Counted from the first letter of the stretch, positions 1,373-56,841 are shown. The stretch is DNA of 64,000 bases from Paramoeba atlantica (GCA_977017575.1 CDRNVI010000139.1:186001-250000); one strand, 5' to 3'. Notes: generated from the letters alone by a model not told the origin. A program made the numbers and translations.

Positions 1373-3877
<2,505 letters not shown>

Positions 3878-4059
3878 AAGAGAGGAGATTGAAACTCACT
3901 CATTTTTGATGTGGGGTTGTTTTGAAAAGTGATCACTCTTTGGGTTCTTCTCCAACAAAAAAAATAAAATAAATAATTGCGATTTTTTGGAATCGAACCC
4001 TTCCTTCTTTTTTTGGTTGTTCTCCTTCTTGCTTGTTCTTTTTTGTGTGTTGTTTGGTG

Positions 4060-4530: not shown

Positions 4531-4793
4531 TCACTGGCAAAATCTCTCACAAAAGGAGAACAAACGGAAGAATTACAGCATTCAAAGTGTCATCAGAAAC
4601 CGAGGTATCTTTCTTTATTCTTTGAAAATGAAAAAGTGCAATTGTTTCATTTTGTGAAAGAGGTTTCAATTTGACAAAACCACTCTCTACAGAAAGGTGG
4701 GTGACTTAATTTACAGACATGACTCGTTTGAAGAGCCGAAAAATTGATTTCGAAGGGGATATTAACCGAGGAATATTCTCTCTCTCCTCTCTC

Positions 4794-6112
4794 TTAGGTT
4801 GCTCGTGATGTTCTTCTTCTTTTGCGAGTCTGTACTCCTTCTGGTGAGGATGATCTTTGCGTTGATAACTGTGAAGGGGAAGGGGAAGGGGAAGGGGCTG
4901 GAGCTGAGGAACCTGAAAAAAAGGATGGTTAACCTCCTCTCGATAAAAGTAACTTCCCCCAACTCTCCTTTTCTTTGTTTTTTTGAAGAAACTTACTTAC
5001 TTGAGGAACTTGAAGAAGAAGAAGAGGAACTTGAAGAAGAGGGGAGGAAAGTTTCAGGAAGCCTGTCGCCACATGATGGACATCTATCGCTTTGGTTTGA
5101 AGCGAGAATTTTGTAGCAGTGCAGATGGATGATCTTTCCACATCCGACACATTTGGTTCCCTAAAATCAGAATTATTGATTGTGTTGAATTATTATCACC
5201 GAAAAAAAGGAATAATGGTTCAAAAAAAGAGAGAAGAATACCCTAAAGCAGATTTCTTCGCAAGCGGCACACTCACGACCCTTCACAACACTCTCATCAA
5301 ATTCATCTGAAAATAATTCAAAATAAGAATAAGATTCTTGTTTTTGTTTTGAGTTAAAGAGAAAGAAGATTAAAAACCTTGAAAGTATGGTTTTAATTCT
5401 GCAATTGACCGAGCAGTTAAAGCCACCAATCCTTGTTGGGGGGACTCGAGCCATCCACCAGCAATGCATTTGGCAACAAACTCCCGTGGTACGTTGAGAT
5501 TCTTTGCTGATTTGGTTACAATTGGTTCTTTTGACTTCATCATTTCTTCAATCTAACTCAAACCAAAAAGTAAATCAACACAACAGAGAGAGTAACACCG
5601 GAGAGAAGAGAAAAACAAGAAACACAAACCACAACTTCAAGATGTTTTAATTCTTTCTCAGTAAATTCAGTTCCAATCGAGCTCCCAAATCGATCTTCTC
5701 GATCCATTTGCGTTGAAACAAGAACGTAGATTGGCTGGGTAAAATTTGGTTTCAGAACTTGGGGGGTTTTGGATAAAAAGAAAAAAACAAAAACAAAAAC
5801 AAAATGACCAGACAAGTCCGTTCATCATATGTCTTTCGAATCTCAAAATAGAGCCATCGAAGATGCTGATTAATTGTCATTATTAGAGCGTCTAAGTTTC
5901 TTTCTTTCACTGTGAATGTGAAAATTAAAAAATGGAAGCAGAAAGGAAACAACAAGGAAAAAAAACCAACTCTCAACATTCTCTTTCACTTTTCGAAAAA
6001 TTTTGGAAAGGTTTGCTTGCGTTTGCACTGGTTCTTGAAAGAACGATTGCACGAACACACGGTGTCCATTTGTATATACTTCAGGATCAGATTGGTTGTA
6101 CCGAGATCCCAT
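4794..6112 (-). CDS. NSMCE1: SMC5/6 complex subunit NSE1 (winged-helix + RING-like)
   Basis: Spliced exons give HRVFVQSFF, LDALIMTINQHLRWLYFEIRKTYDERT, IYVLVSTQMD..GTEFTEKEL, and a RING variant CAACEEICFRGTKCVGCGKIIHLHC..CPSC. The last exon ends RKRRRTSRAT* (TAA 4794-4796). Confidence 0.85.
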
Positions 6113-6400
6113 CCCTTCAAAAAAGAGAGATTCAAAAAAGAGAGAAGAAAGAGCGAGTGGGAGAGGAGAAAAGTCGTTTTTCCGTTGCAAAAAAAACACA
6201 AAGTCCAAAATTATGGTGTCCCTTTTTATATTGGACACCTTTGCCTTTTTCGGAGAAAATTTCGCCGAATTTTTTTGGACCAGGTCTGTTTTTCTCTTTC
6301 TTTTTGGTCGAAGTCAGCGAAAAGATAATGAAAAGAAAAAGATGGGGTCTGTGGTTTGTGTGGAAACAGTTTTCCAATTTTTGAATTTGAAAAAAAACAA

Positions 6401-7961
6401 ATGGAAACAAGTAGTATTTTTGAGGCGTTTCGAATTGCGCCGGATGTACCTGAAACGATGAGACTTTTCGGGAAGCTTTCGGGTCTCTATCTTCAGAGAA
6501 CTGCTCTTCAAAATGAGTTCTCGATTTCTTTTCTCGACTTTTTGAAGAAAGAAACTCACCAAGGCACTCGTGTTTTGTGGAATCTCTTTGAAAACAAGAG
6601 GAAGAAGATGATCTGTTCTTGTCTGGGAAAAAGGGTTACTGTTGTTGGAGGTTTGTGTTAATTCTCTCTTCTTTTTTTTTTCTCTTTTTCTTCCTTTTTT
6701 TTCTTCTTCTTCCCTCTTCAGATGTCAAAAAGAGAATTGTTTGATTGATGAATTGATTTTTCTTTCTTCAGCTGGTCCTGCTGGTTTACAAGCAGCGATT
6801 GACTATCGAATGATGGGAGCGAATGTTGTGGTTCTTGAAAAGCGACTCGATTTTGGACGACACAATGTAATGAAGTTGTGGCCTTCCAGTGTTGCTCACT
6901 TGAAATCGATTGGATTGAAATACTTTTTCCCTAAATTTTGTTGTGGAGGTTTGGAGCACATTAGTATTCGAAAATTGCAGCTTTGTATGACGAAAATCGC
7001 GCTTCTTCTGGGGATTGATATTTGGTTTGGGACTTCTTTTGAAGGTGTCGAATCCCCAAAATTCTCTGGAGCAGGATGGGATGTTCGAACTATTACACAA
7101 TCTATGGGAGATCTCAGGTTTTGCGAAAAGAGAGAAAGTGTGATCGTAACAGACATTTTGATTGGAGCAGATGGAGTCAGATCAAAGGTTGGGGAGTCAT
7201 GTAATTTTTCTCGACGAAAAGAAGGAGGTCGAACGAGGTTGTTGGGAATTACTTGTAACTTTGAGAAATATGGAACCATTGTTGAACGTAACTTAAAAGA
7301 ATTTAGTCTAATTTCATATCTCAACCAAAACCGATTTCGCAAGCTGGAGACAGAATATGGTATTCAATTGGAAAATCTTGTCTTTTTTCGAGATGAGACC
7401 TTTTACTTTGTGATGACACCCAAGATCCGTTGTTTGGTGAAGAAGGGAGTTCTTCGATCTGGAGAAGGTTCTCCACAACAACTTTTGGAATCAAGTAATG
7501 TCAATGTCGAAAAATTAGAAGACTTTGCTCGAGAGATTGGAGAATTTTGTGGTCTTCCTCAGTCTTCAAAGATGATCCTCGTTCGAGGAAAACCTGATGT
7601 TCAGATCTTTGATTTTTCAACGAAAATGTCTTGTACACAACAAATTCGATTTCTAGATGCGCCTTCCCATCTTGATGATGTGAACCCTTTGATGGTTGGG
7701 GTGGTTGGAGATGCTCTAATTGAACCCTTTTGGCCTTTGGGGACTGGTGCCAATCGAGCACTGCAGAGTGGTATGGATATTGCCTGGCTTGGGCAGAGAT
7801 TTTGTTCCAATGTTACAACAGAAGAGATTAAACGCGAAGGGCGACAAATTCTTCAGGCTCTTATCAATAGTGATGAAAATCTCTTAAAGAAACCCTCTTC
7901 TTTCACAATTGATCCTGCGTCTCGTTATGTGAAATTCTTGGTGGATGAAATTATTTTTTAA
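6401..7961 (+). CDS. MICAL-type FAD-dependent monooxygenase domain protein, standalone
   Basis: Intron 6651-6771 joins VTVVG to AGPAGL (GxGxxG). EKRLDFGRHNVMKLWP, KFCCGGLEHISIRKLQL, VGDALIEPFWPLGTG and FTIDPASRY all match the MICAL MO domain. The ORF stops immediately after. Confidence 0.85.
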
Positions 7962-37200: not shown

Positions 37201-39870
37201 GAAATATACTGCGAGAGTTTTGACTGAGGTTGGAGAGCTGTTTTTGATGAGAGAACAATATCAAAATTCGATACTCTTTTTTGAACAGGTTTTTCTCTTT
37301 CTCTTTCTCTTTCTTCTCTCTGTCCCTCTCTCTTCTCTCTTTCCCTCTCCCTTCTTTCTCTCTTTCTCTTTCTCTTTTCTCTTTTCTCAAAATGGATCAT
37401 TTGAAATATCCTGCAAGAGTTTTGCCTGAACCACCATTCTCTTTTTCATTCTCTTTTCTTTCTTCCCTTTCCTCAAAACCACCACAGATTTTTTTTCTTT
37501 CTCTTTTTCTTTCTTTCCTCTCTCTCTCTCTCTCTCTCTCAATCAAAGAACCAATAAAAAAATAGGCACTGGCAATACAAGTTCGAGTTCTTGGGACGGG
37601 GAGTCACGCCACAATTTCACATCTTTATCGGTTAATGGGTTCTGCTCTTTCTCCTCAGGAGATGTGGGAGGAATCTTTGGATAGGTTTTTTTTTTATTTT
37701 TATTATTATTATTTATTATTATTTATTATTATTATTTATTATTATTTTTTGTTTTTTTATTTATTTTATTATTCTTCTGATTTTATTCTGCTCAAAATTT
37801 CTTCTTCTTTTATTCTTTGTTTTTATTCTTTTTGAAAATAAAAATAGGTACAAAGATGCTCTTGCAGTTGAAGAAGAAATAAATGTCGATCCACAAAATT
37901 GGGTTGTCACGATCACTTCGTATACTTTTATTTTTTACTTCATTTTTATTCTTTTTCAATTCATTCAAAAAGAATCTCAAAAAAAACAATTTTTTCTTTT
38001 CTCTTTTTCTTTCTCTTTTTCTTTTTCTTCGCTAGATATGAAATTGGTGTCACGGCTCTTTTGTTGGGGCATTGGGCGAGTTGGCATGCAAATGATATTG
38101 AAGCTTCTTATTATTATCAATATGGAATGCATTTTCTCTTAAAATCATATCAACTTGGGTTTTGTTTCAATTCTTTATTATTTTAGAAGAGGAAAAGAAA
38201 GAGAAAGAAGAAAGAAAAGAAAAAAGAAAGGTAAAACATAGAATATTTACTTTGTTTTATTAAATTGAATTTATTTTTTGTCAAAAAAGGAGGCTTTTGG
38301 GAAAGACAGAAAGAAGTCCTTTTATGGCAAAAATGAAATGTCGAGTGGCCGAACTTCTTCACCGATTTCAGAGTGAAAAGTGTTGTTTGTATGTTCGAAA
38401 AGTTGTTTTTGGATTTGGAAAAGAGGTTTTTTTTTATATTTATTTTATTTATTTGTTTTATTTTCAAATGTTTTTAATATTAATATTATTACTCTTTTTT
38501 TAAAATTTCTTCATTTTTTGAAATGGGCAATTAGATTGTTTGGCAAGATGAAGAAGAAGTAAGTTGTGAAATGCCAAGGTTACAATGTGCTTTTCATTTA
38601 TTACGACATTCTCTTTGGACTTTTGTTGATTTGTATGAGGGTTCAGCCAATTTTCCTGTTACAGAGGTATGCTTAAGAGACTTCTTTTTTATTTAATTTT
38701 TAGATAATAACAGTTTGAAAACCAATTTTTTGATAAATAAAACAAAAAATAAAATAAAAGAAGTAAACAAAAATAAATCAAGTAAATAATCTCCAAAAAA
38801 ACAGGTTCTTCGAAATACAGGAGATGTACTAGTAGACGACGGAAAAAGAGATCTGGGTCTTCATTGTTATACCCAAACAAGAGATATTCTTCATCGTTTG
38901 TATGGTCCTGAGCATTATTTTGTTGCTCGCATTTTGCAGAGAATTGGTTCTTCTTCTTCTTCTTTAGTATTATTAATGATTATATTATGATTATTATTAT
39001 TTATTACCATTAATTATTAAGTATCCTTATTGTTTATCTCTCTTTTTTCCAAGAGATATTCTCCCATTTCTTCAAGATTCAAAGAATGAAAATAGGTGGA
39101 ATTATGTTGGGGCAAAGAAAGCTTGATGAAGCAATGAATTATTTTACAATGGCACTCGCAATTTTCAGGTTTGAAAAAAGAGAAAAGAAAGAAAAAAAAT
39201 CTTTCTTCTCAGTTTAAATTTTCATTCAATCTTCTTATTTCCCTCTCTCTCCCTCTTCTCTCTCTCCCAGACTCTCCTCTCCATCAGACGAACACAGAGA
39301 CATCGCAACAACAATAAAATATACTGGAGACACACGCAAATTAATGAGACAATTTAAAGATTCTATTGATTGTTATAAAAAGGCTCGAAATATTTGGAGG
39401 AAAATGGGAAATGGGCGTGACGATTGTGACGAGATTGCCAGTCTTTATGTTGGTTTGTTATTTTTTTTTTCAATATTTTATTTGTTTTTAACATTTTCAG
39501 AATGAAAGGAATTTATTTGACTTGTATTCAAAAATATTTTTGATAATAATCAATTTTACAGAGATATCAGATGCACAATGTTTAATGGGAAAATACGCCT
39601 CTGCTCTCACCAGTATCGAAAAAGCTCTTCAAATTCGAATACAGCTTTTTCCTCCCAACCACCCTCGTGTCAATGGTTTTTAGTTTTTCTTTTTAAGAGA
39701 AGAGAAGAGAAGAAGGGAAGAGGAGAAGAAGAGAAGAAGAGAAGAGAAAGAAATTGAATCTTCTTTTTTTTCTTGCAGATGCTTTGGTTGAGAAAAATAT
39801 TATTCAAGATTTACAACCACCTTGTTTTGATTACTTTCTCAACATTTGTAGTGCAGTGAGAAGAAAGTGA
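28240..39870 (+). CDS. Large NB-ARC/STAND-like + TPR protein (NLR-like), highly intron-fragmented, degenerate Walker A
   Basis: VLLSGTENCCRRDLAIAF (P-loop position), FWFDASSELSL, WVLVYDNAED (Walker B), GCIILISSR. C-terminal KLC-type TPRs (LDEAMNYFTMALAIF; ALTSIEKALQIRIQLFPPNHPRV). Stop TGA 39868-39870. Internal exon boundaries are approximate. Confidence 0.7.
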
Positions 39871-39975
39871 GTTCTCTCTTTCCTCTTTTCCTCTCTTTTC
39901 TCTTTCATGAAAAAGATCACAAATGAAGAATTACTTGCAAAGGATTTTTTTATTGATTTGATTTTGATTTGGTTT

Positions 39976-42900
39976 TTACTTTTTCTCACAAAAAGAGAAG
40001 CAGTCCTTTTCCGGATTTTGTGTCTAATCATAAATAACAGTGATTAATCAAAAAGAAAAAATAAATTCATGATCAAATTCATTAAAAAAAAGATATTTCA
40101 AAACTCAAAAAAGATCAACAAAACTCCCCCTCCCCCCAAAAAAACAAACAAAACAAAAACAAAAAACAAAAAACAAACCTCAAAATCAGAAACCACCTCC
40201 AAACCAGGAGAAGCAAGACACTCCTCCTCCCCCCCCTGCAACATCTGACAACGAAAATCATTCTCCTCAACAACAAGAAACCAACAACACCGAACAAAAC
40301 CACTCGGAGGAGGTGGAGGAGATGGAGTTGGAGATGGCGTTGGTGTTGGAGAGGGGATTGGCGTTGGTGTTGGAGATGGTGTTGGTGTTGGTGATGGTGA
40401 GGGGGTTGGTGTTGGTGTTGGTGTTGGTGTTGGAGATGGGGAGGGCTGTGCGGGTGGGCCGAGGAGTGTGACTTGTCCGGAGAAAGACCATTCCTTTGAG
40501 AATTGATTTTAGAAATTGGAGAGATTATATTAATGGAGAGAATAAAATGATTTTTGCGAAAAAAGAAAAGAAAAAATAAAAAATTGAGACCAAAAGAGTG
40601 CCTTCATTCCCAGTAATTTGATCTTCAACTTCCAAAGTCCATCGACCTTTTGCAAAAAAAAAAAGATTTAAAAATTCAATTCAAAACAACACAGTTCTAA
40701 TTCGAAGAACCTCGAATATCCTCATTCCAATGCCAATTGGTCACAAAATCAAACCCACCCTCCTTGTTATAAGAATTTCCCTTTTTTTGGAGAACAAAAA
40801 AGATAAGAAGAGAGAAAATAAAGAGAGAGAAAGAAGTCTTCTTCTTACCGCATTGAGTGGGAGTTTTGTCCCTTTCATTTTGACAGCTGTTGGAGGACTC
40901 TTAAACATTTGGGGATATAATCTCCTGTAAAATAAATATTAAATTTCAATTCTATTTTCTTTTAATAAAGTGATTTTAAAATTTTAACAAACCTGATTAA
41001 ATATTGTTCAGTTTCCCAAAAAATTGTGTTTGTTCTCGAAGGTTGATATTCAAAAGCCTGATCTATTTCAACATATTGTCAATAATTTACTTTGGTAGCG
41101 GGAAAAAAGAAGGATTTTCTCACCAATCAAAAGCGCATCAAGTTCAAATCCTTTTCTTTTCAAATTTTCCAAAATCGTGGGCACCGAACAACTGCATCAA
41201 AATCGTTCATTCAAATATTAAAAAAAATGAGAATTTGTCCCAACTCAAGAAATACAAACTTGCTCTTTGGTACCAATAAAACAGTGAAGTATTGTGACCT
41301 AAAAATTCATTTCAATTTCATGTTTTTCTAAAACTAGAACACTAAAAACAAAAAGTACAAACGTTGTCGAATATCCAGATAATTTACAAGTCCTTTCCTC
41401 ACAACAACTGTCTTCTAACACTTCCCAATAACTATTTCCAAACAATTATTGTCAAAATCACTGTAAAAGAAAAGAGAAAAAGAGAGAAACTCAGAGGTCT
41501 GAAAAGTGACAAATTGAACATCAAATTCAATCGGCCTCTGTAAATCTTGTGCGCCGAATTTTCCAGCTAAAAAAATAATAATTATTCAACAAACCAAAAA
41601 AAGAAAAACATTCATGAAATGATTGAATTACGAAATTTTGTTTTTTCATAATTATGAAAAAGAATTAAAACCATCATTAATTGCTCTCACTTCAATTGGG
41701 ACCCTTTCCCCTTCAATGATCCAAGAAATCTAAAGATATTTTGTTATTGAAATCCAAAAGATATTGAAATCAAATTTGAGAGATAAAAACCGAATTTGAA
41801 TTGTAATGCCCAACAGATGTTGATAAAATACTTCTTGTATTCCTATTTTTTGAAATAATTATCAAAAAAATTCTTTGAAAAAGAAGAAAAAAAATCATTC
41901 AAAGATTAAAATGAAATGAGAGAAAACAGACCATGGTGAGACAAGAGTAATTTGCAGCTCGCTTGCATCAGGATGCTCAATCTGAACATTCACTTTCACA
42001 CTCTCCAATCGATGAAAAGACCCCCCTAAATGATACCATTTTAAAGTGAATTCTCAAAAGAAAAGGAAAGAAAAAGAGAGAGAAAAAGAAAAGAAAAAGA
42101 GAAAGAAAAAGAAGAGAAACAAACGGGCGGACACATCGATTGTTGATCTTTTCACTTGGTGATCAGGAAGTTGGTATTTTCGAGTTGAACGAGAATCCAC
42201 AAACTTAATTATTTTTTTTAATTTGATTTTTGGAAAATACAAAAAAGAGAGAAAGAAGAGAAAGAAAATTGTACCTTTATTCCATTCAATCTTTTCCATT
42301 CTCTCTGAAATTGAACTTCTTCCACCGCTGCGGATGCATTCACAAAACCCAACCCCGCCTAATCCAAACAAAAACAAAACATTAAAAAAGAAAAAAAAAG
42401 AGAGAAGAGAAAGAGAGAGAAGAGAGAGAGAGAAGAGAGAGAGGAGAGAAGGAGAGAGGCACTTTTGGGTGGAAACGATGGCCACCATGGTTCCAATTCC
42501 AAGAGATTCCTCCAGGATGATACGCTGTATTTACCTATTTTGATAATTTAAAAATAATTTCTTTTTTGACAAATTAGAATTTCTTTTTGAATTTCTCAAA
42601 ACAAACCAAAATGTGACGAATTTGTTGAACTGTCATTTTCTTTGGCGCAGCTTCTTTCATGAGTGCAACCACTCCAGCTGAAAAAAAAAATCGAAGAAAA
42701 AAGTAGAGAGAAAAAGAGAAAAGAAGAGGGAGTAAATAAAAAGAATAAAAAGAAAAATAGTAGAAAAAAAAAATTCGAAAAAGAAAAAAAAATAATAATA
42801 AAACCGACAAAAGAGGCGGCAATTGGACTCCCGTAAACTTGAACACATTTTGATTCAGAAAATGATGGTAAACTTAATGGAGAGGCGTCACTTCCACCGG

Positions 42901-45074
42901 GAGCTGAAATTAGCTGGTGAAATGGGAACAGGTTTTTTTTTTGGTGTGTGGGGAGGGAGTGGGAGAGAAGGAAAAGAGGGTGAGAAATGAAGGGGAGAGA
43001 GAGAGAGAAAAGAAAGGGGGTTGGGTGTGAAAAAGCAGAAAAAAGAAAAAAAAGAATAAAAGAATAAAAAAAAGAACAAAAAAAGATTTTAAAAAAAAAA
43101 GAAAAGAAAAAGAAAAAGAAAAGAAAAAAGCAAAACTGAAGCAGCACAAAGCTCAGCTTGAGGGGGGATAGAGAGACCATTCTTCTTTTGTTGATGAGAA
43201 GAAACTGTGATCCCCCAAAGAGGAGAACAATATTTATCGAAATTACAATTGTCTTCTTTTTTTCCTCCATCTCCTATTTATTTTAATGTTTAAATATGAA
43301 ATAAAATATTTTATTTTAATATTGGTATTTTAATTTTTATTTTAAATTATCTTTAAATTATGAGTTTTTTTTTCTTACTTATTCTTGGAAAGAAAAAAGA
43401 ACCTGCTGAAATAATAACAGGTTTTCCTTCATCATAAGCACTTTTCACAATATCTTCACAAGTAGAACCTTTTTCAAAAAAAAAAAAAAAGAAAGTCTCA
43501 AAATTCAAAAAAGAAAGAAATCAAGAAAAAACAGAGATGAGAGAGAGGAGGGGAGAGGAAAGAGGGGGAGAGAGAAGAGAGAAAAGAGAGGGAGAAAAGA
43601 AAAAAGAAAAAAGAAAAAAGAAAAAAAGAAAAAAGAAAGAAAACATTCTTGACGATGAGAAGGTTCATCAGTAGAACCATAATTGACAACATAAATATCA
43701 GATCTTCCATGTTTTCTTAAATCATTCTGAATATACGAAAAACCAGCCATTTCCTTTTTTGAAAAGAAATTTATTATTTTGGAAAAGGAAATCCATATTT
43801 TATGGAATAAAAATAAAGGAATAAGAATAAAGAATCAGAATGATCAGAATGGAGAATTAAAGAATAAAGAATAAAGAATGAAAGAATAATAAAAAACCCC
43901 AATGGATTCTTATTCTCTTATCTTTTCAAAAATCTACTTCTTTTCTTTCTTTGAAATCTCAATTTTCTCCATTCTTAATTTTAAAGACTCTTTCTCATAA
44001 AACAATCTCTTTCTTTTCTATTCTTTTAAAATGGAAAAGTATTTTAAAAAAACCTCCATTGTACCCAAAACAGCATATTTGGCGCCTGGGGCAACTCCAG
44101 CTGAACAAACATTCCCTTCTCCCACTAAAAATAATCCAATTTTGAACATTTTCTCTTCTTTTTTCTCTTCATCTCTTCCTTTCTTTTCCTTCCTTTCTTT
44201 TCCTTTCCTTTCTTCCTCTCTTCTCTTTTTCTCTTTTTCTCAGAATAAACAAGAAAAAAACCAGCAGCCCCAGCACAAACTGGGAGAGTCATATCAAGGC
44301 TTGAAAGTCCAGAAGTTGAACTCGCCTGTTTTTTTAGGGAATGAATGAAAGAAAGAAAGAGAGAAGAGAGAAGAGAAAAAGAAAAAGAAAAAAAAGAGAA
44401 AATAAATAGAAGAGAGAGAGAGAAAAGAATGAAAAACCTTTCGATCAATCTGAGCAATTAAATCGAGGTGTTTGGGGATTGGTGAACCAGCTCCAGGAAA
44501 TCCAATCACCACACCTTTTTTATTCTTCAGAGAGAGGAAGAGGGAAAAGAGAGAAAAGGGAAAAGAGAAAAGAGAAGAAAGAATAAAAAGGAAGAAGAAA
44601 GAAACCTTCCCCAGAAATGCCACTCTTCCAAACATGGTCCAAATCCAAACCCCCTTTTTCGAAAAAAAGAAAACCAAATTTGAATTGATTTTTATCAAAA
44701 AGAAAGAAGAAGGTAAAAGAAAAGTAGAGACAAACCAGGTTGCGATTCGGAATACCATGAGAAGATACTCTTCTCTTCTCCAAAACAAAAAACAAGAGAA
44801 AGAGACAAGAGAAGAAGAGGGCGAAACATTTCTCCTCAAAGAGAGAGAAAAGAAAAGAGAAAAACGCCACAAAAAAAGGAAAAAAAGAAAGACTTTTTGA
44901 TACCGAAAAATAACCTTTTTTGTCTTTTTGGAGGTGCTTTTCTCTTTCTTTTTGACCTTTCTGGGATGAGAGCCGCCCGACCTGCTCCAGAACAAAATTT
45001 TCTTGTTTCTCAAACAAAACCAAATTTTGGATTGAGTCTTTTGGAAAGAAAATGGAGGGAAAAGCTATGATCAT
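39976..45074 (-). CDS. Kexin/furin-like (S8B) pseudoprotease lacking the catalytic triad, with P domain, PA-like insertion and Pro/Thr stalk
   Basis: Spliced exons: [129 protein letters not shown]. The start codon is uncertain; 45074 is the first in-frame ATG. Confidence 0.75.
40305..40445 (-). repeat. (CCAACA/CCATCT)n repeat encoding a PTPTPSPTP mucin-like linker
   Basis: Tandem ggtgtt/ggagat hexamers on the + strand, in frame with the pseudo-kexin C-terminus. Confidence 0.85.
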
Positions 45075-46877
45075 CCCTCTTTTCCTTCTTTCTTTTGTTT
45101 CTCTTTCTCTTTGCGGCACTTTTGGTCACGGGCTTCCGCCATCCTTCCATGTCCCTTCTGACTTCAACCCAGAGACCGCAGAGCTTTCTGATGAGTGGGC
45201 TGTTCGACTTCGAGAAGGAGTTGAAGATATCCATAAATTGGCCTTTGATCATGGGTTCAATGTCCATCGACTTGGTATCGCGTCTTTGAAGAATGTTTTC
45301 ATCTTCAAGGAGCACCCACAACGATCTCGTTTCCCTTTCCCTCACTTGAACTTGTCTGAACATGTTGAGTGGGCTGAACAACAAATCTACCGCCGTCGTG
45401 TTCGCCGATCAATCAACTTCAATGATCCAAATTACGAGGATCAGTGGCATTATCATTCTGTGGGGAAAGATATGAACATTCTCCCTGTTTGGGAATCTGG
45501 GAATATGGGAGAAGGATGTCAAATTGCCATTGTGGATGATGGACTTCAGTGGAGTAATCCTGATTTGTCTGTCAATTATGACCCTCTTGGTTCTTATGAT
45601 TTCAACTATGATGACGATGATCCTACTCCTGATAAGTACGAGGACCAGCATGGAACTTCTGCTGCTGGTTGTGCTGCTGCTGCTCCCAACGATATTTGTG
45701 GTGTTGGTACTGCACCCCATGCCAAACTTTCTGGTATTCGTTTGATTTCCAAACTTGCTTCTGATGCGACCGAAGCAGATGCTCTTGGTTTTAAGTCTGA
45801 CCGAAATCAAATTTATTCAAACTCTTGGGGACCGACTGATGATGGAGATACCCTTGAAGGTCCTGGCATCCTCTTGCGCGATGTCTTTACCGATGCAATT
45901 CAAAATGGGAGAGACGGAAAGGGAGCTTTGTATGTTTGGGCTGGTGGTAATGGAAGAAGTAGAGGTGATAATGGGAATTATGATGGCTATAATAACAAGC
46001 CTTATACTCTTTCTATTGGTTCATATGACTATTCTGGACATGTTGCTCATTATTCTGAGTCTTGTTCTTGCCTTTTTGCTTCAGCTCCAAGCAGGTTTCT
46101 TTTTTTTCTCACAGTACCATTATTATTATTTTTTTGACCCTATATACTTCATTCCTGTCAGTCTTTCTCATTTTTTTTATTCATTTCTTTCTTTTTAGTG
46201 GAACCTCTGGACCAGAAATTGTTACAACCTCTGTTTCAGCAAGGAATAATTATTGTACCTCATCGTTTGGTGGAACCTCTGCTTCTGCTCCAATGGTGTC
46301 AGGTATCATGTGTCTTGTTTTGAATGCGAATCCCCATTTGACCTGGAGGGATATCCAAGATATTGTGGTTCTGTCATCAGCTCCAATTGATCCTAAATCT
46401 TCTTGGCAAGGAAATGGTGCTGGTCTTCACTTCAGTCACAATTATGGTTTTGGAAAAATTGACGCTGCTCGTATGGTAGAATTGGCGGAGAATTGGGTTC
46501 CTTTGCCTCCTTCTGTTTTTTTTGATAGTGGATTAGGTTCGCCTCAAAAGTCTGTCGCTCGTGGTGCTAGTGAAACTATCACAGTCGAATGTGATGAAGA
46601 TTTTGTTGTTGAGCATTTTCAGCTTTATTTCAAAGTTTCGATTCAAAGGAGAGGGGATCTTTCTTTGACTGTTTTCTCACCATTTGGAACAACAAGCAAA
46701 ATGATGGTTAAACATCATGATTTGAAGCCTGGTATTACTTGGGTTGCTTCGAGTAATGCTGCTTGGGGTGAAAATTCGAAAGGTCAATGGAAATTGAAGT
46801 TCACCAATGGGGGATCTCGTGATATGATTATTCGAGAGTATGAGATCGTTCTTGATGGTCATATGTCCCCCAATTAA
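45052..46877 (+). CDS. Kexin/furin-like proprotein convertase (S8B), soluble; signal peptide, prodomain, catalytic and P domains
   Basis: Signal [23 protein letters not shown] maturation site, triad IVDDG (D 45535), QHGTSAAG (H 45649), GGTSASAP (S 46278), oxyanion WAGGNG, P domain VEHFQL..RRGDL..WGENSKGQW. One intron, 46095-46198. No TM tail. Confidence 0.93.
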
Positions 46878-47143
46878 GTCGCTCTTTGAAAGGCCTCCTG
46901 ACTCAGTTATTTTTTATTTTTTTAATTTTTATTAATAAAAAACCTTGATGGTATTTTTTCGATTGCCAAACTCTCAAGAAAGACGCAAATGAAAGAAAGA
47001 AAAAGACCAATTTGGGGCGATTTGGGATGTTTTTGAAAAATCCCTTTTATAGAAAAAGTACTTATTTGAGAGGATAAAAAAGCAGTCTTTGCCCAGAGGA
47101 AAAAAGGAAAGGGAAAAGGAAAAAAGTCCCAAGGAAAAGAGGA

Positions 47144-49420
47144 ATGGGAGAGAGGATGAGACGGGCGTCCTTTCTTTTCTGTTTCCTCTCTTTTGTGCTC
47201 CCCTCTCTTTCTTTCTCTCTGGGAGGAGGAGGAGATTCACTCACCGAGACAAACACCAAAACAAAAAACAATTCTTCTTCTCTTTCTCTCTTTCATTATG
47301 AGAAGTATTGGAAGAGAGCAGAGAAGCTCGCTCTCTTAGAGGACAGACAAGTTCCTCACTTTCAACCTTTGAAAGGTTGCCTCAAGGTTCCTTTTTCTTG
47401 TTCTTAATCTGATTCAATCTTTCGCTTCATATTTTTTATTATCTCAAGTGAACAAGAAAAAAAAAGAGAAAAAGTAAACAAAATTCTCCCTCTCCAAATC
47501 TCAGACAAAAAACCTTTCTTTTTTCTCTCAAAAAACAAAAAACAAAAACAAAAACAAAACAGATCTACATATACAATCTCTCCCAATCCCTTCAAGGAGA
47601 CTTCCCATTCGAAAAAATCACCTCCCAAGAATGGTTAGAAAAACTCGTCTTCATCAAAAAAAATCAAAATACAAAACCATTCGAATTCGAAACTCCAATG
47701 AGAGCAGAAATTGATTTATTCCTCTATCGCCTTCTTGTAGACAACCAGAGAAGAAAGGAGGACCCTCTCTATTTTCGATATTGTGGCTTTCGTTGTGAAT
47801 TGGAGAGGGCGAGGAAGTTGTTGTATGAAGAGAGAGAGAGAGAGGGGTGTTTTTTGACAAGTGATCCAGAACAGGCGGATTTCTTTTTTGTTCCAATTCA
47901 TTTGGAAATTGGGAAATGGGGTCATGACTTTTGTCGACAAGGATCAAACTTTTCTGAGGTGTTTCCTCTCTCTCTCTCTCTCATCCCATTTTCTAAACCT
48001 TCAAAAACTCAAATTTTATTTCTCTTTCAAAAAAGATTCATCACAAGAAAAACCAAATTTTGGGAGAACTAGTTCATCTGAATCCTTCCACTTCTTGCCG
48101 CCACTTCTTTATGCATGCACAAGGTCTTTTCTTTTCTCTTCCTCTCTCTCTTCTCTTGAAATAATAAAGTCATTTTTCTTAGGGACTTATCAAGCAAGAA
48201 ATTGTAAAGCTTGGTTTTCTCGACCAGAGGGTTTATTTCAAAATGTTCTCAGAATTGGAGGAACACCAATTTTGCCAAAACATTCCCCTTTAGTACGAAA
48301 TGATCTCGAATTTTTTGAAAAACCAAGTTTTGAGGTTTCCTTTTTCAATTTTTTGGTGATTTTCAAGAAATCAAAAATGGAGTTTGATGGACTTGCAGAG
48401 AGTTCCAAACGAGTTTCCATATCTTATTTCAGTACCATATCCCACAAATGTTCATTGGTCAAGGACATTCAGAGGAAAGCCTCCTTGGGCGAACTCAAAC
48501 ACAGTTAATAATCTTTTTCTGAAAAGATCAGTTTGTTTTTTCTCACGAGAGGAAAAGTTTTCTCACTTTCAACCCCAAGATCAAAAAAAGGAAATATTTT
48601 AATCAAAAATATTATAAAATAGGAGAGACCCATCTTGATGTTATATTCTTCAAGAGCAACCGAACTCCATGGTGATATCCCAACCAGAGAAAAAATCCTT
48701 CAAGCTTGTCAGAATTATCAGAAAGTCAGCCTCTCTTTCTTTTAATAATCGAAAAAAATAATCTCATTTTTCCCTCTTTCTTTGTAGAAATCAGCTGATA
48801 TTTGTCACCTCGATCTGGATTCTGGAACTCTCTCCAAAAAAGAGAATGCTGTCTTTTGTCTTGAGCCAATGGGAGATTCCCCATTTCGAAAATCTATCTT
48901 TGGTTTTTCTCTTTTTAATTTTTTTTTGTCATCACTTTGAATGACCATTTATTCCTTTTTGTTTGAAGATTCAATCACGTATGGCTGTATTCCTGTTCTT
49001 TTTTCCGAAATAACTGACACTATTGCCCCGTATCATTGGGGTGGATGGAGAAATAGAACTCGAGTTTTGGTTTCAAGAAAAGATTTTCTCGAAGGGCGGA
49101 TTGATTTAAAGGTTTCTTTTCTCCTCTCTCTCTCTCCTCTCTTGCTTCTCCTAAAATTCGAATATAGGTCCTCCTTGAGTCAATTCCCTTTTCTCTCCTT
49201 CGAATTCTCCAACAATCAATCCATAAAGTTGGAAAGAGATTTCAAACAAGTTTGCAATATGACCCAGGTATCTTTTTCTTTCAATTTTTCCAAAATGGGC
49301 ATTAAATTTGATTCATTTTAACCAGGGGATTCTCAATCTTTTATTTTGAGAGGACTTGTTGATAAGAAAGGAAAATGTGAAGCTGATCTGAAAAAAAGGA
49401 AAACAAATTACTTCCACTAG
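47144..49420 (+). CDS. Exostosin-family (GT47) glycosyltransferase
   Basis: N-terminal hydrophobic anchor, IYIYNLP, TSDPEQADFFFVP, ISVPYPT, AVFCLEPMGDSPFRKSIFDSITYGCIPV. Stop TAG 49418-49420. Confidence 0.85.
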
Positions 49421-49773
49421 ACAATAACCCAAACAATATAATTGATTCAAATGAGCATCAACAACAACTTCGAGATTGATGAATGTGTTTTCCCAAATGA
49501 AAAAGAAAGAGATGGGAAAGAATTTATCTTACGACATCCAAACCATCTCAAGATTTTTATTCAAGCAAAGCGAGCAAAAAAATCGAAGAATAAAATTCTG
49601 GTTGAAAGAGGTTTTTTATTAAAGAAACAAATCCAGAGAGAGTGTGCAAAAAACTCTGTTTCTGTTGGGAACGAGAAGAAAAGGGGGTCAGATGAAACTG
49701 AACCAGAACAATAAAAATAAGAAAGGTGGCAGAGAAAAGAAAAATCAAAAAAACTAAAACCTTCTCTTCAAAA

Positions 49774-51669
49774 TTATTTCCAAAATTCAATTGACTTCTT
49801 CCCACAATCTGAAACAATAATTGTTCCCGAAGCAACAACAACGCCGCGTGGCTTCTGAATGTGATCTTTACCAAATAAAAAAAGAAATGTTCCATCTTTC
49901 TCAAACACACTCACTCTTTGATTTTTTAATTCACCAACAACAATTCTACCTTCCCCATCCACATCAACACTACTGGGAAGAGCTAGTTGAGAATCACCTG
50001 AACCTTCTGTTCCAAAACATCGAATAAAATTCCCTTCAATATCCATCACTTGAATTCGGTGATTTAAACAATCACAAACAACAATATTCCCATCTCCATC
50101 AACTACAACACTCATAGGTTTGTTAAATTGACCTTCAGAAGAACCTTTTGAACCAAAAGAATGAATAAAAGATCCATCATTATCAAACACTTGAATTCGA
50201 TGATTCCAAGCGTCAGCAACAATGATTCGACCTTCTTCATCTACATCCACTCCCCATGGGTTGAAAAACTGACCCTCTCGAGAACCTTTTGATCCAAAAG
50301 ATTTGATCAATTCTCCTTCTTTGTTTAATATTACAACTTGAAAAGAATCTTGAGAATAATCAAGAACAACAATTTGATCATCCAATCCAATTGAAACATC
50401 AACAGGTTCCAAATAAAGTGAATCAATTGTTTTCTGAATTGTTGATTCAATCATCTCATTTCCTTCTTTATCTCTCACTCTCAATCCACCCCTCCATTCA
50501 CAAATAAAAATATTCCCATCACTGTTCACACACACTCCTAAAGGTTCGTTGAAAGGAAAAGAAGAAATGACACGAAACGAATCACCACCACCATCACAAC
50601 AAATCACTCCTTTCTTTGGTTTTCGTAATCCAACAACTCCTCCTTCAGAAACAATATCATTTGCAGTTTGAAGAAGAGTTGAAAAAAGTTGATCATCAAA
50701 AAAAAGAGAAACATCCGTTGGTGTGTTGGATAAACGAATAATTGAATCTTTTCTTATTCTCAAATCTTCTTTCTCTAATTCTATTTCTTTCTTTTCAATT
50801 CTTTTCTTTTCTAATTTCTCTTCTAATTCTTTCATTTCTCCTTCAATCCTTTTTCTTTTTTCTTCAATAAAAATCAATCTTCTACCCAATTCATCTCCAA
50901 TCTTTACAACTTCATCCCTTTTCTTCAAAACACTTTCTTCAATCGATTTCACTTCCTCTTTGTGTTCTTCATGTGTTTCGAGAACACAACGAATACAAAC
51001 AAAAGAAGAACATTGAAAACAATATCCGCTGATTGTTTCAGATGGGTGGTTTGAACAATCTCTCTTCTTCATCTCAAGATCATCGCCATTATCGTAAGTA
51101 TCGCAAGTGAGCATCTCTGATTGAGAAGAGAAAGAACGTGAAAACGAAAATGGATTCCAAGAAGAAGAAGAGAGAAGAACATCGATCGTTTCTGGAATCA
51201 AATAATTCAATTCAAGTGTTTCAATCATTTCACATTCGTTCGCTTTTCCATAAACCGGACATTTCACTCCTCTCAAAGAGAAAGAAGAAGAGGAAGAAGA
51301 GGTAGAAGATGATGAAGAAGAGGAAGAGGAAGGATTTTGAAGAAGAAAGAGTTTGTTGAGACAAGGTGAACAAAAAGAAAGACCACAACAAGGTAACAAC
51401 CTTGGTTCTTTTTCCCAATTCATCAATTCCAAACATATTCCACATTCAAATCTTTTCTTTTTCTCTTCTTCTTCTTTCTCATTCTGCATCACCACTCCTT
51501 CTTCTCTTTCTCTTTCTTCACCTTGTCCTCTTCCATCATCCTCAATCATTCCAACAACATCATCATCACTTTGTCCTTTTTTTCCACTTTCGATTTTTCT
51601 TTTCTTCTCTCCATTCTCACTTTCCACTCCCATCCCTCTATTCTTTCTCTTTCCTCTTCCGTCACTCAT
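49774..51669 (-). CDS. TRIM-NHL protein copy A (RING with CPVY, single B-box, coiled coil, NHL propeller), intronless
   Basis: 631-aa uninterrupted ORF: CGIC..PCCGLSFCSPC..CPVY, CSNHPSE..CFQC..CIRC..HEEH, coiled coil, and repeated GQFxxPxGV..DxxNHRIQV. Confidence 0.9.
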   Translation of the reverse strand: MSDGRGKRKNRGMGVESENGEKKRKIESGKKGQSDDDVVGMIEDDGRGQGEEREREEGVVMQNEKEEEEKKKRFECGICLELMNWEKEPRLLPCCGLSFCSPCLNKLFLLQNPSSSSSSSSSTSSSSSSFSLRGVKCPVYGKANECEMIETLELNYLIPETIDVLLSSSSWNPFSFSRSFSSQSEMLTCDTYDNGDDLEMKKRDCSNHPSETISGYCFQCSSFVCIRCVLETHEEHKEEVKSIEESVLKKRDEVVKIGDELGRRLIFIEEKRKRIEGEMKELEEKLEKKRIEKKEIELEKEDLRIRKDSIIRLSNTPTDVSLFFDDQLFSTLLQTANDIVSEGGVVGLRKPKKGVICCDGGGDSFRVISSFPFNEPLGVCVNSDGNIFICEWRGGLRVRDKEGNEMIESTIQKTIDSLYLEPVDVSIGLDDQIVVLDYSQDSFQVVILNKEGELIKSFGSKGSREGQFFNPWGVDVDEEGRIIVADAWNHRIQVFDNDGSFIHSFGSKGSSEGQFNKPMSVVVDGDGNIVVCDCLNHRIQVMDIEGNFIRCFGTEGSGDSQLALPSSVDVDGEGRIVVGELKNQRVSVFEKDGTFLFLFGKDHIQKPRGVVVASGTIIVSDCGKKSIEFWK

Positions 51670-52388
51670 CTTTATCGCTCAACAGAAAGAAAAAACACCA
51701 AAAGAAGAAAAAGGAACTGGGAAGAAGAAAGAGAAAATTCAAAAAGAGTAAAACAAAAAATCGAAACCAAAAAGAAATCAACCTTTTCTCGATTCGAAAG
51801 ACCCAAAGAGAGAGAAAAACAAAAGAAACAAACTCGAAAAACACACAAACCAAAGTCAACCAAAAACTCCGAAACACAAAACGAAACGGGAAAAGATCAA
51901 AAGTTGAAGTTGAAAGCTGATTTGAAGTTGAAAAAGTGTCAGTATTGTAATGGTTGAAATTTTGAAACAAGGAGAAAAGGAAGAGAAACAAAGAAAGAAC
52001 AAGGAGAAAGAGAGAGAGAGAAGACCGCCGAAAAAGACAAATCTCCAAAACCACAAAAAAAAAGAGGATTATTATCGGTGTGAACTTTTGAGGCTTTTAT
52101 TTTAGTTTGGGTATGGACGAATTATTTCTCTCTTTTTGGTTTTTTCTCTTTTTCTCTTCGAGAGGTTTGTGGCTTCTTTTTTCCTTCAAGAAGAGGTGGC
52201 TTCTTTTTTGTTTTCTTCTTTTTTGTTTTCTTCTTTTTTTTCTTTTTCTGAGCAATTTTTCAGATTTTTGCTCTTTTTTCCCAAGTGTTCTTTTGTCTTT
52301 CGTCTTTTCTTCTTTCCTCAAGAGATCTTTTGTTTCCTGAAGAGATCTTTTATTGTGTGGTGGAAAAGATTGTCATATTGTGCAGAAA

Positions 52389-54430
52389 ATGAGCGAAAAG
52401 GATGAAATAGAAAACGAGAAAAAGGAAGAGAGAAGAAGGGATGAAAGATTTGATTGTGGGATCTGTTTGGAGTTGATGAGTTGGAAGAAAAAACCGAGGA
52501 TGTTACCTTGTTGTGGGAATTCGTTTTGCTCTGATTGCCTTCAGAAACTCTTTTCTTCTCAAGGAAAACAACAATCGCTCTTTCCAACCACTTCTTCGTC
52601 TTCATCTTCATCTTCTTCCTCTTCTTCTTCTTCATCGTCTTTCTCTTCTTCTTCTTCATCGTCTTCCTCATCTTCTTCATCTCCTTCATCAGCTCTCTCA
52701 ATGATGAGGGGGAATTGGAGTGAGGATTGTGGTGTTGTGAAATGTCCTGTTTGTCAAAAAGTGAATGAGTGTGAAACAATTGATTCGTTCGAGACGAATT
52801 TTTTGATTCCAAAGACGGTTGATGTTCTTCTTTCTTCGGCTCTGGTCTCTGAACAATCAGGTTTTCCTTTGTTTGTACCTTTTGTTTTTTCTCCTTTTTC
52901 TCTTTTTGGTGACTTGAAGTGCTTGGAAAGGAGAGAGAATTAAATGTAAAAACAGGAGTTTCACCAGAATGTGTGAATTTTGAAACGTGTGGAGAACGAA
53001 CTCGGATGTATTGTTCTGATTGTAAAGTCTTTATTTGTGATTCTTGTGATTCTTCTCACTCTTCTTCCATTTTCTCTCGAAATCATGAACGATCTGAAAA
53101 ACGGAATAGGAGTTGTGGTGATGGTGATGGAGTTGGGAACTTGAAGAAGAGAGAATGTTCAAAACACCCATCTGAGTTGGTTTGTGGATATTGTTTTGAA
53201 TGTTCTCTTTTTCTTTGTCTTCATTGCGCTCTTGATATACATGGTTATCACAAAGAGAAAGTAAAATCGATTGAAGAAAGTGTTTTGGAGAAAAGGAATG
53301 AAGTCGTAAAGATCGGAGATGGATTGGAGAAAAGATTGGAGATTGTTGAAAAGAAAAGAAAAAGGATTGAAGAAGAAATGAAAGAATTGGAAGAGATATT
53401 AGAAGAGAAAAGAATCGAAAAGAAAGAAATAGAATTGGAGAAAGAAGATTTGAGAATAAGAAAAGATTCAATTATTCGTTTATCCAACACGCCAACCGAT
53501 CTCTCTCTTTTTGATGATCAACTTTTTTCAACTCTTCTTCAAACTGCAACTGATATTGTTTCGGAAGTTGGGTTACAGTGGTCCTCAACAAAGCCGACAA
53601 CGAAAGGAGGGATTTGTTGTGATGGTTCATTTCGTTTTATTTCTTCATTTCCTTCAATAGATGGACCATACGGAGTGAGTGTGAGTAGTGATGGGAATAT
53701 TTTTATTTGCGAACAGAAGGGCGGATTGAGAGTGAGAGATAAAGAAGGAAATGTGATTGATCCCATCCAAGAAACGCTCGATTTGCTTCAGTTGGATCCT
53801 GTTGATGTTTCAATTGGATTGGATGATCAAATTGTTCTTCTTGATTGGTCTCAAGAGTGTTACGGGGTTGTAATATTAAACAAAGAAGGAGAATTGCTCA
53901 AATCTTTTGGATCAAATGGTTCTCAGCTTCGTCAATTTAATGAACCATGGGGAGTGGACGTGGATGGAGCGGGTCGAATTATTGTTGCCGACACTTACAA
54001 TCACCGAATTCAAGTGTTTGATAATGATGGATCTTTTCTTTGTTCTTTTGGTTCAGAAGGTTCTTCTGAAGGTCAGTTTCGTGCACCGCATGGTGTTGCA
54101 GTTGATAGAGATGGGAATATTGTTATTTGTGATTATTGGAATCACCGGATTCAAGTGATGGATATTGAAGGGAATTTTATTCGATGTTTTGGAACAAAAG
54201 GTTCAGGTGAATCTGAGTTATATTTTCCAAGAAGTGTTGATGTGGATGGGGAAGGTAGAATTGTTGTTTGTGAATGGAAAAATGGGAGAGGGAGTGTGTT
54301 TGAGAGTGATGGAACATTTCTTTTTTCTTTTGAAAAAGATCACATGAAACCAAATGGGGTTGTTGTGGATTTATTTGGAACAATTATTGTTTCAGATTAT
54401 GAAAACAGATCAATTGAATTTTGGAAGTAA
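52389..54430 (+). CDS. TRIM-NHL protein copy B (RING, two B-boxes, coiled coil, NHL)
   Basis: ATG 52389; intron 52861-52955; B-box1 CVNFETC..CSDCKVFICDSC..H; NHL repeats. Confidence 0.92.
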
Positions 54431-55057
54431 CTGATTGTAATTCTATTTTTTTTGCTTTTCCCATTTTGATTTTATCTTCCGATTTATTTGGCGAGAATAT
54501 TTTTTTTGACAAGGTTGACGATTAAGACAAAATTAAGAACAAGGAGGTGAAGAAACATTGGAAAAGAGAAAAGGAAAACAGAATTTCACACACAAGCAAC
54601 GCAAAGAACAGAAGAGAGGAAGAGGAAGTCTTTTCACCACATAAAAAAAATCTTTGAAGTGGATCATTCGACACACAAAACGAGACACACCGAGAAGAAG
54701 GCTCCAAGGGAGATCTATTTTTTTTCGAGAAATAAAACTCTTTCGAAAAAAATCTCTTTTTTTTCAAAGAGAGAAGAGAAAAAAAAACCTCAAAGAAAAA
54801 AACAAACAAAATAACAAAAACAAATTGGACAAAATGAGAGAAAAAAAATCACAAACCAAAATAGGTAACAACTCTAATTTGTTGGGGGAGGAACAAATAA
54901 AAAAAATGAATATAAAAAAATCAAATCAAATCTCACTCCATCATTTTTCGTCAAAAAACAAATAAAAAAGAGAAACTAAAATATCAAAAATCCTTCAACC
55001 CCTTCTTGAGAAAATAAAAAGAGAAAAAATAAAAAAGAATCAAAAAAACCTTCTCTT

Positions 55058-56841
55058 TCAAAATGATTTCCACAATTCAATTGAATTTTTCTCACAATCT
55101 GAAACAATAATTGTTCCAAATGAATCAATAACAACCCCAATAGGATGCTTCATGTGATGTTGACCAAATGAAAAAAGAAATGTTCCATCTTTCTCAAACA
55201 CACTCACTCTTCCATTTTGTCCATCACAAACAACAATTCTACCTTCCCCATCCACATCAACACCTCTTGGATAGTTCAATTGAGAATCACCTGAACCTTC
55301 TGTTCCAAAACATCGAATAAAATTCCCTTCAATATCCATCACTTGAATCCGATGATTTAAACCATCAGAAATAACAATATTCCCATCTCTATCAACTACA
55401 ACACTTCTTGGTTCATAAAATTGACCTTCAGAAGAACCATATGAACCAAAAGAACGAAGAAAAGATCCATCATTATCAAACACTTGAATTCGATGATTTC
55501 CAGAGTCAGCAACAATAATTCTACCTTCTTCATCCACATCCACACCACATGGTTCACAAAACTGACCATCTTCATCACCAAATGATCCAAAAGATTTGAT
55601 CAATTCTCCTTCTTTGTTTAATATTACAACTCTATCTTGAGACCAATCAAGAACAACAATTTGATCATTCAATCCAATTGAAACGTCAATAGGTTCCAAT
55701 TGAAGTGAATCAATTGTTTTCTGAATTGTTGATTCAATCATCTCATTTCCTTCTTTATCTCTCACTTTCAATCCACCCTCCTCTCCACAAATAAAAATAT
55801 TCCCATCACTGTTCACACTCGCTCCACAAGGTGGATTCTTCAAAGGAAAAGAAGAAACAAAACGAAAAGAATCACTACCACCATCACAACAAATCACTCC
55901 TTTCTTTGGTTTTGAGAATAACCCAACAACACCTCCTTCAGAAACAATATCAGTTGCAGTTTGAAGAAGAGTTGAAAAAAGTTGATCATCAAAAAAGAGA
56001 GAAACATCACAATCAGTTGTTGTTGTTGTTGTTGTTGGTGTGTTGGATAAACGAATAATTGAATCTTTTCTTATTCTCAAATCTTCTTTCTCCAATTCTA
56101 TTTCTTTCTTTTCAATTCTTTTCTTTTCTAATTTCTCTTCTAATTCTTTCATTTCTTTTTCAATCCTTTTTCTTTTCTTTTCCACAATCTCCAATCTTCT
56201 CTCCAATCTATCTCCAATCTTTACAACTTCATTCCTTTTCTCTAAAATACTTTCTTCAATCGATTTCACTTTCTCATTGTGTTGAACATGAGTTTCAAGA
56301 GCACAACGAATACAAACAAAAGAAGAACATTGAAAACAATATTCACTGATTGTTTCAGATGGGTGTTTTGAACATTCTCTCTTCTTCAAATTCTCCAATC
56401 CCATCACTCCCACCACCACCCCTCCCTCCTCTTCCAATCTTCTTCTTCCACCTCCCTCAACACCATCTCTTTCAGGTCGTTTGTGATTTTGAGTGAAAAT
56501 AGAAGAAGAGTGAGATGAATCACAAGAATCACAAATGAATACTTTACAATCAGAACAAAACATTTGAGTTCGTTCTCCACACGTTTCGAAATTCACACAT
56601 TCTGATCCATCATCTTCTATTTTGGTTTCTTTTTCGTCAATTCAAGAGAGAGGAGAGGTTGGAAAAAGAAAGAGAGAGAAAATTAAGAAAAGGAAAGAAA
56701 AACGTGATTGATTGGAGAAAGAAATCAAATTTGAAGAAAGAAGAACATCAATCGTTTCTGGAATCAAATAATTCATCGAAAGTGTTTCAACACTTTCACA
56801 TTCGTTCATTTCTCTACAAACTGGACATTTCACTCCTTTCA

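Follow-up and report, generated by a model that had tools for sequence, protein, structure and literature searches.

A predicted kexin-type pseudoprotease encoded head-to-head with an active kexin in Paramoeba atlantica

Two genes of the kexin family are arranged as divergent, head-to-head neighbours in a 64,000-nt stretch of DNA from Paramoeba atlantica (GCA_977017575.1, CDRNVI010000139.1:186001-250000; hereafter the window). One of them, on the plus strand (45052-46877), encodes an active kexin. The other, on the minus strand (44829-39976), encodes a kexin homologue in which the catalytic residues are replaced, and is referred to here as the pseudokexin. We put the probability at roughly three in four that the minus-strand gene encodes a secreted, noncatalytic binding protein that is maintained by selection; its coupling to the neighbouring enzyme is unproven. 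In the predicted protein, a signal peptide leads directly into an S8B-like domain with no intervening prodomain; behind it lie the P domain and a Thr/Pro-rich linker, and the protein ends in a short C-terminus that contains Cys.

The active kexin and the catalytic positions of the pseudokexin

The plus-strand gene has two exons that together encode 573 amino acids with the complete organization of a kexin: a prodomain, an S8 domain with the Asp, His, Asn and Ser residues (D/H/N/S) and a P domain. Exon 1 (45052-46094) encodes a signal peptide, an S8 prodomain ending in RRRVRR, the catalytic Asp (IVDDG), the catalytic His (HGTSAAG) and the oxyanion Asn (AGGNG). The sole intron (46095-46198, GT-AG) was placed by reading the sequence, and its junction agrees with the transcript-derived protein P0001. 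Exon 2 (46199-46877) carries GGTSASAP with the catalytic Ser and continues through the remainder of the S8 domain and the P domain to the stop codon. All four motifs can thus be read in a gene that the preliminary description of this DNA had credited with an intact Asp/His/Ser triad and oxyanion Asn, and the Pfam domains are complete, with matches to S8_pro-domain (2.4e-11), Peptidase_S8 (1.8e-30 and 2.5e-11) and P_proprotein (1.1e-13), the second Peptidase_S8 match and the P_proprotein match both lying in exon 2. Kex2 and furin chains from the PDB align to the protein with an E value of ∼5e-56. The protein is 93% identical to P0001, a Paramoeba atlantica transcript protein (EukProt EP00008, MMETSP0151) whose length of 573 amino acids equals that of the joined plus-gene frame. 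Since it stops directly after the P domain and contains no transmembrane segment, the product is predicted to be a genuine, complete and soluble convertase without a membrane anchor.

The model of the pseudokexin gene was rebuilt independently by reading the minus strand, with splice sites picked on phase and consensus. Seventeen core exons, from the ATG at 44829 to 40591, join into 451 codons with consistent phases and no stop. The joined frame was used only for continuity and for site counting; homology searches with this gene were carried out with single exons or stop-to-stop fragments. A kexin profile of 560 positions, built from 70 full-length homologues, was run on the stop-to-stop fragments, and the profile positions given below refer to it.

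The four positions that define the catalytic machinery carry other residues in the pseudokexin. The catalytic Asp is replaced by Gly at 44492-44494, where VVIGFPGAG in exon 3 (44514-44438) stands against xxIAIVDDG of kexins; exon 3 follows directly in phase on exon 2 (44653-44606), which aligns with profile positions 126-139 and in which an 11-residue segment precedes the motif, and it is this phase continuity that places the motif. The catalytic His is replaced by Thr in exon 4 (44325-44262), which reads DMTLPVCAG against HGTxCAG and contains no His at all; a 12-residue segment follows this motif, and exon 5 (44124-44054) aligns with profile positions 198-213. At the junction between exon 7 (43468-43403), which ends in ISAG, and exon 8 (43273-43137), which continues (A)GDGG, the sequence SAGDGG corresponds to SGNGG, with Asp aligned on the oxyanion Asn of Kex2. 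The catalytic Ser is replaced by Pro at 42824-42826 in exon 9 (42913-42805), which reads YGSPIAAS against GGTSASAP in the best overall fit, where the following helix stays in register; owing to a one-residue length difference before this motif, a profile alignment may instead put Ile at the Ser column, and neither residue is Ser. These are the replacements that had been proposed earlier (IVDDG to FPGAG, HGTxxAG to TLPVCAG, GTSASAP to GSPIAAS and an AGDGG oxyanion motif), and both the readings and the coordinates of the Gly and Pro codons held in the rebuilt model.

Exon 1 (44829-44736) contains the start codon, a signal peptide (a hydrophobic N-terminus by eye) and ∼14 residues, SWY...HVWKSG, that align with the QWH...VWESG start of mature kexin. 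Because the signal peptide runs straight into the start of the mature domain and only 222 bp separate the start codons of the two genes, the pseudokexin has no prodomain; the preliminary description had recognized none either. Convertases are thought to need the prodomain for folding. Other features specific to kexins are kept, namely the motifs DNCNxDxY, xCAG and VCxxGVAP. Asp residues match Kex2 D320 and D325 in the alignment of exon 8, which reads DNCNFDKY and includes both of these acidic positions, and the segment corresponding to WGPxDD reads YGSTDE in exon 6 (43753-43645; profile positions 235-249). In Kex2 and furin, these acids make up the S1 pocket, which binds Arg, together with its calcium site. 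The S1-pocket acids appear to be kept and a preference for basic motifs is plausible. The minus-strand gene lacks every feature that defines a kexin as an enzyme, that is, the triad, the oxyanion Asn and the prodomain.

It is very unlikely that the pseudokexin is still an enzyme, either one that works with noncanonical residues (e.g. the Ser before Pro in GSPIAAS) or one whose true catalytic exons are missed by the model. Such an enzyme could draw on the Ser that lies one residue before the catalytic Ser column, which the one-residue length difference makes ambiguous, and on intron 15 (41790-40781), which has ORF-like pieces with usable splice sites; however, the Asp, the His and the oxyanion Asn are replaced too, exons 3 and 4 offer no candidate His in the right place, and the frame of exons 9, 11, 12, 13 and 15 is confirmed by synonymous-only differences between two assemblies (see below). 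A regular-expression scan of all three minus frames over 39900-45060, intron 15 included, found no canonical Asp, His, Ser or Asn motif, with no D[DS]G, HG[TS] or G[TS]S in any frame of the locus. Alternative splicing therefore cannot restore the triad, a possibility that the preliminary description had considered.

Homology to the kexin family and structure of the pseudokexin gene

Twelve exons of the pseudokexin match the kexin profile, and their order along the gene is strictly that of the profile (positions 126 to 550 of 560); the chance that this order would arise at random is ∼1/12!. Exons 2, 5, 6, 8, 9, 10, 11 and 12 cover positions 126-436, corresponding to the S8-like domain, and exons 14-17 cover positions 473-550. 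Within the S8-like domain, exon 9 with its kept helix and exon 10 (42677-42607) align with positions 350-365 and 371-392, respectively, and exons 11 (42534-42463) and 12 (42358-42275) with positions 403-415 and 420-436; the last two encode the end of the domain, where AGLGFVNA stands against YGFGKIDA. The P domain is encoded by exons 13-17 (42203-42125, 42025-41932, 41842-41791, 40780-40711 and 40646-40591).

Two exons are recognized individually by homology searches. The PDB chains matched by exon 8 (46 amino acids) all belong to Kex2 or furin (E value of 0.0023), and among 1.84 billion representative proteins its single match was the ordinary kexin P0121 (E value of 1.4e-5); against our own kexin profile it scored 4.9e-6. 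Exon 14 (30 amino acids) by itself matches Pfam P_proprotein (6.3e-5; 23.4 bits, with a cutoff of 21 bits). It was the only exon detected when Pfam was run on single exons, and the general S8 model recognizes no exon of the catalytic domain. A PDB sequence search with exons 5, 6, 9 and 14 returned nothing. When the plus protein was compared with the 64-kb window by tblastn, one weak match was obtained, to exon 8 (E value of 1.9), the near-empty result being a consequence of the shortness of the minus-gene exons. A MAFFT alignment of P0001 with the separate exons, intended as a profile query, scattered the fragments and was not used. By descent and architecture, the minus-strand gene is supported as a full-length kexin-type homologue (S8B plus P domain), and the in-order mapping of 12 exons, together with the passing Pfam score of exon 14, agrees with the earlier claim of an alignment along the whole S8B and P architecture.

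The pseudokexin gene is predicted to be intact and intron-rich, with at least 18 exons. All of its introns are GT-AG, with a pyrimidine-rich tract before the acceptors; 13 of 17 donors begin with GTT, as does that of the plus-gene intron, and a GTTT donor recurs. The exons are 16-46 codons long. Of the 16 introns among the core exons, 15 are 64-300 nt in length and mostly consist of C/T-rich low-complexity sequence, the other being intron 15, which is 1010 nt long and interrupts the P domain. Intron 15 is not of low complexity; its composition is ordinary and its sequence is not repeated elsewhere in the window. In-phase ORF pieces within it (41729-41671 and ∼41566-41493) are flanked by good splice sites and could be cassette exons. 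As its differences from the second assembly described below include 1- and 2-nt indels, most of intron 15 is noncoding.

The 3′ part of the gene (40493-39976) starts with exon 18 at 40493, which encodes the end of the P domain, the Thr/Pro-rich linker and the Cys-containing tail; Pfam found nothing in this part. A short last exon (40023-39976) is probable, with its stop codon at 39978-39976 and an AATAAA just downstream. Support for this final exon comes from a donor near 40184 that resembles the consensus, together with an acceptor at 40024 and the AATAAA after the stop, and its end at 39976 coincides with the one given previously. A T/G-rich low-complexity stretch on the minus strand at 40123-40186 is probably the start of the last intron. 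The preliminary description had counted about 20 exons in a continuous frame; the rebuilt model has the 17 GT-AG core exons with their 451 open codons plus exon 18 and the probable last exon. Two other solutions were considered during model building. Between exons 5 and 6, an in-phase GAG/GTTTTT donor at 44054 was preferred to an 11-nt micro-exon near 43900, which was rejected. A version in which exon 18 runs on to a stop at 40100, which would produce a hydrophobic C-terminus, was judged to be less likely than a further intron and a short last exon. The window as a whole is AT-rich (∼35% G+C) with numerous short GT-AG introns. The genome of P. pemaquidensis is likewise intron-rich, with ∼500 genes that have more than 15 introns and with most introns in the range 50-150 bp (PMC5601477).

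Selection on the two genes

The locus was compared with L003, a 45-kb contig (ENA ERZ24900291) from a second assembly of the same species that represents another haplotype or isolate. The identity is 99.7% on the plus-gene side and 97.2% on the minus-gene side. The 17 core exons of the pseudokexin differ by eight substitutions in 1353 nt, with no indels, whereas its 16 introns differ by 65 substitutions in 2841 aligned nt and an additional 123 gap columns. All of the exon differences are synonymous: one is located in exons 9-10, three in exons 11-12 and four in exons 13-17, and inclusion of two further differences in exon 18 (40440 and 40446) brings the ratio of synonymous to nonsynonymous changes to 10:0. 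The probability that eight of eight substitutions are synonymous under neutrality is 7e-6 (with 22.8% synonymous sites). The dS of ∼0.026 equals the divergence of the introns, dN is 0 and the upper bound for omega is roughly 0.1. The splice dinucleotides are identical in L003 at all 33 of the sites checked. The synonymous-only pattern also provides independent confirmation of the frame in which exons 9, 11, 12, 13, 15 and 18 are read.

The coding sequence of the plus gene (573 amino acids) likewise differs from that in L003 by eight substitutions, of which five are synonymous and three are nonsynonymous (at 45571, 46372 and 46411; Val/Ala, Leu/Gln and Gly/Glu); its intron has four substitutions and one gap column. 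By this small sample (5:3), the active kexin is less constrained than its dead neighbour. Based on the 10:0 differences, the indel-free exons and the kept splice sites, the minus gene is under purifying selection no less strict than that acting on the active kexin. The proposal of purifying selection rather than decay, made earlier from the window alone, is thus borne out by the comparison (dN of 0), and a decaying pseudogene is effectively excluded. A dead, functionless copy of a kexin gene would be in keeping with the loss of all catalytic residues, with the very low similarity to other kexins and with the failure to find an orthologue, whether with exon 8 among the 1.84 billion representatives or with a word search based on exon 9; yet 451 codons are open over 17 phase-consistent exons despite the deep divergence, the exons are free of the indels that are frequent in the introns and every splice site is kept in both assemblies, which makes such a copy extremely improbable.

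The divergence between the two assemblies is patchy over 37490-56000. There are no differences over 43650-44956, pseudokexin introns 7-11 diverge by 3-10% with many indels and the plus-gene side diverges by only 0.3%. This pattern suggests a recombinant haplotype mosaic.

Possible function and relation of the two genes

Since the pseudokexin cannot cleave by the subtilase mechanism, it would most likely bind instead, in the secretory pathway or at the cell surface. With an acidic S1 pocket that appears to be retained, the recognition of basic motifs may survive, and the Thr/Pro-rich linker is suggestive of an O-glycosylated stalk. If proteins of this kind do bind basic motifs, they would form a new class of molecules that read dibasic sites in the secretory pathway.

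Several observations weigh against a selected, noncatalytic binding protein or limit how far its description can be taken. No orthologue of the pseudokexin was found with exon 8 in the 1.84 billion representatives, which include the P. atlantica transcriptome that holds the orthologue of the plus gene, and a word search that took the open frame surrounding exon 9 as its query gave back the ORF from L003 and nothing else; the pseudokexin may be lineage-specific or may have been silent in the culture used for the transcriptome. Of the five sequencing runs listed for the organism, none is recorded as RNA. Exons 3 and 4, which carry the positions of the lost Asp and His, have no profile alignment of their own and are placed by in-phase continuity only. 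The structure of the gene between ∼40190 and 40024 and the content of intron 15 are provisional in the present model. Finally, the binding function and the retention of the S1 pocket are inferred from short alignments combined with the residue roles in Kex2 and furin.

The closest known relatives of the pseudokexin are Kex2 and furin (MEROPS S8B; Pfam Peptidase_S8 and P_proprotein), a family of which the plus gene is a full member. The minus gene resembles them in domain order, with in-order mapping over the whole length, and in the DNCNxDxY, xCAG and VCxxGVAP motifs and the S1-pocket acids of Kex2, but differs from them in having no Asp/His/Ser triad, no oxyanion Asn and no prodomain with an autocleavage site, and in having neither a clear transmembrane segment nor a cytosolic tail for sorting. 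Pseudoenzymes that regulate active relatives are known among rhomboids, caspases, kinases and the bacterial Csp subtilases. In function, the nearest analogues of the pseudokexin are the Csp pseudoproteases of Clostridioides difficile, PIMMS2 of Plasmodium and PCSK9. PCSK9 is a convertase-family protein with a noncatalytic physiological action, the binding of the LDL receptor; unlike the pseudokexin, it has an intact triad, a prodomain and self-cleavage, belongs to the proteinase-K-like branch and contains a Cys/His-rich domain instead of a P domain. CspC and CspA of C. difficile, which regulate the active subtilase CspB encoded beside them, are likewise subtilase-family proteins that have lost catalytic residues and are retained by selection (PMC7200643, PMC6636752, PMC12880746). 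These bacterial proteins differ in that they belong to the S8A branch, have no P domain and have kept their prodomains; the functional link has been demonstrated there, whereas here there is only adjacency. PIMMS2 of Plasmodium (PMC5520436) is also a secreted or surface subtilisin-like protein of a protist that lacks the HGT and GTS motifs and has been proposed to be noncatalytic, but it is S8A-like, has no P domain and has no active paralogue as a partner.

The Csp proteins, PIMMS2 and PCSK9 all fall outside the group of S8B proteins that have a P domain, and full-text searches of the literature library used here for a kexin/furin-type pseudoprotease (S8B with a P domain) found no description of one. 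The locus presents a kexin-type pseudoprotease that is maintained by purifying selection without a prodomain. Some members of Paramoeba and related genera are parasites of fish and sea urchins, and it may be speculated that secreted or surface protein families of this kind matter for host contact.

The two neighbours are not the products of a recent inverted duplication. When 124 kexins are ranked exon by exon for their resemblance to the pseudokexin, the plus gene and P0001 come 109th, and the cysteines of Kex2 and furin in DNCN and xCAG, which are kept in the pseudokexin, are lost in the plus-gene lineage; the genes are therefore old paralogues. The spacer between their divergent start codons (44830-45051) measures 222 bp and is a possible shared promoter. 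The co-transcription that the preliminary description had envisaged does not fit this layout, as the genes lie on opposite strands and share at most the spacer. A TPR-repeat gene on the plus strand (38900-39870), convergent to the pseudokexin, ends ∼100 bp from the pseudokexin stop codon. The genome is thus compact and the 222-bp spacer is not special.

A dedicated protease/pseudoprotease module would give this layout a function: the bidirectional spacer would co-regulate the two genes, and the pseudokexin, in the role of a regulator, adaptor, decoy or sink, would attach to the active kexin, to the prodomain released from it or to dibasic substrates. Such a module would suit the head-to-head arrangement across 222 bp, the purifying selection on both genes, a pseudokexin without a prodomain of its own and with seemingly kept S1-pocket acids, and an active kexin that is soluble and has no anchor. 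The adjacency has also outlasted the long divergence of old paralogues, which is unlikely to occur by chance for two members of the same family, and there is a precedent in another branch of the subtilases in the CspC and CspA pseudoproteases that control CspB (PMC7200643, PMC12880746). We nevertheless regard the module as doubtful. Short spacers are the rule in this compact genome, as the next gene illustrates; the spacer is split in the second assembly; two loci from more distant amoebae, L001 and L002, hold orthologous active kexins (∼56% identity) with no kexin-like fragment in their flanks; and the P. atlantica transcriptome has the active orthologue and, in the exon 8 search, no detectable orthologue of the pseudokexin. 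More doubtful still is a particular two-protein unit, in which the pseudokexin would use its cleft, where the Arg-binding S1 pocket is intact but the chemistry is lost, to trap either the inhibitory prodomain released from the active enzyme, by its basic C-terminus and as an activation sink, or substrates at their dibasic sites, as a shield or adaptor. If such a unit does exist, it would give the kexin/furin branch its first described pseudoenzyme regulator, and this locus is the most natural place to ask whether a dead convertase modulates a live one. For the secreted binding protein that we favour, the adjacency is real, and functional coupling to the active kexin, for which adjacency is the evidence, is unproven.

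A comparison of orthologues and synteny, as suggested at the outset, gave a mixed picture: both assemblies of the species carry the pair, which is missing beside the active kexins of L001 and L002. The insertion that splits the L003 spacer is 2.36 kb long (L003:7517-9876) and lies at ∼44941, in the middle of the spacer, so that the tight head-to-head layout is not invariant within the species. The inserted sequence is absent from the assembly of the window and has imperfect terminal inverted repeats of ∼24 nt; it looks like a polymorphic DNA transposon, and its three ORFs gave no match in Pfam. In L002 (ENA ERZ24894578), the region 3867-7877 contains two tandem, apparently active orthologous kexins, each with an intron at the same place as that of the plus gene.

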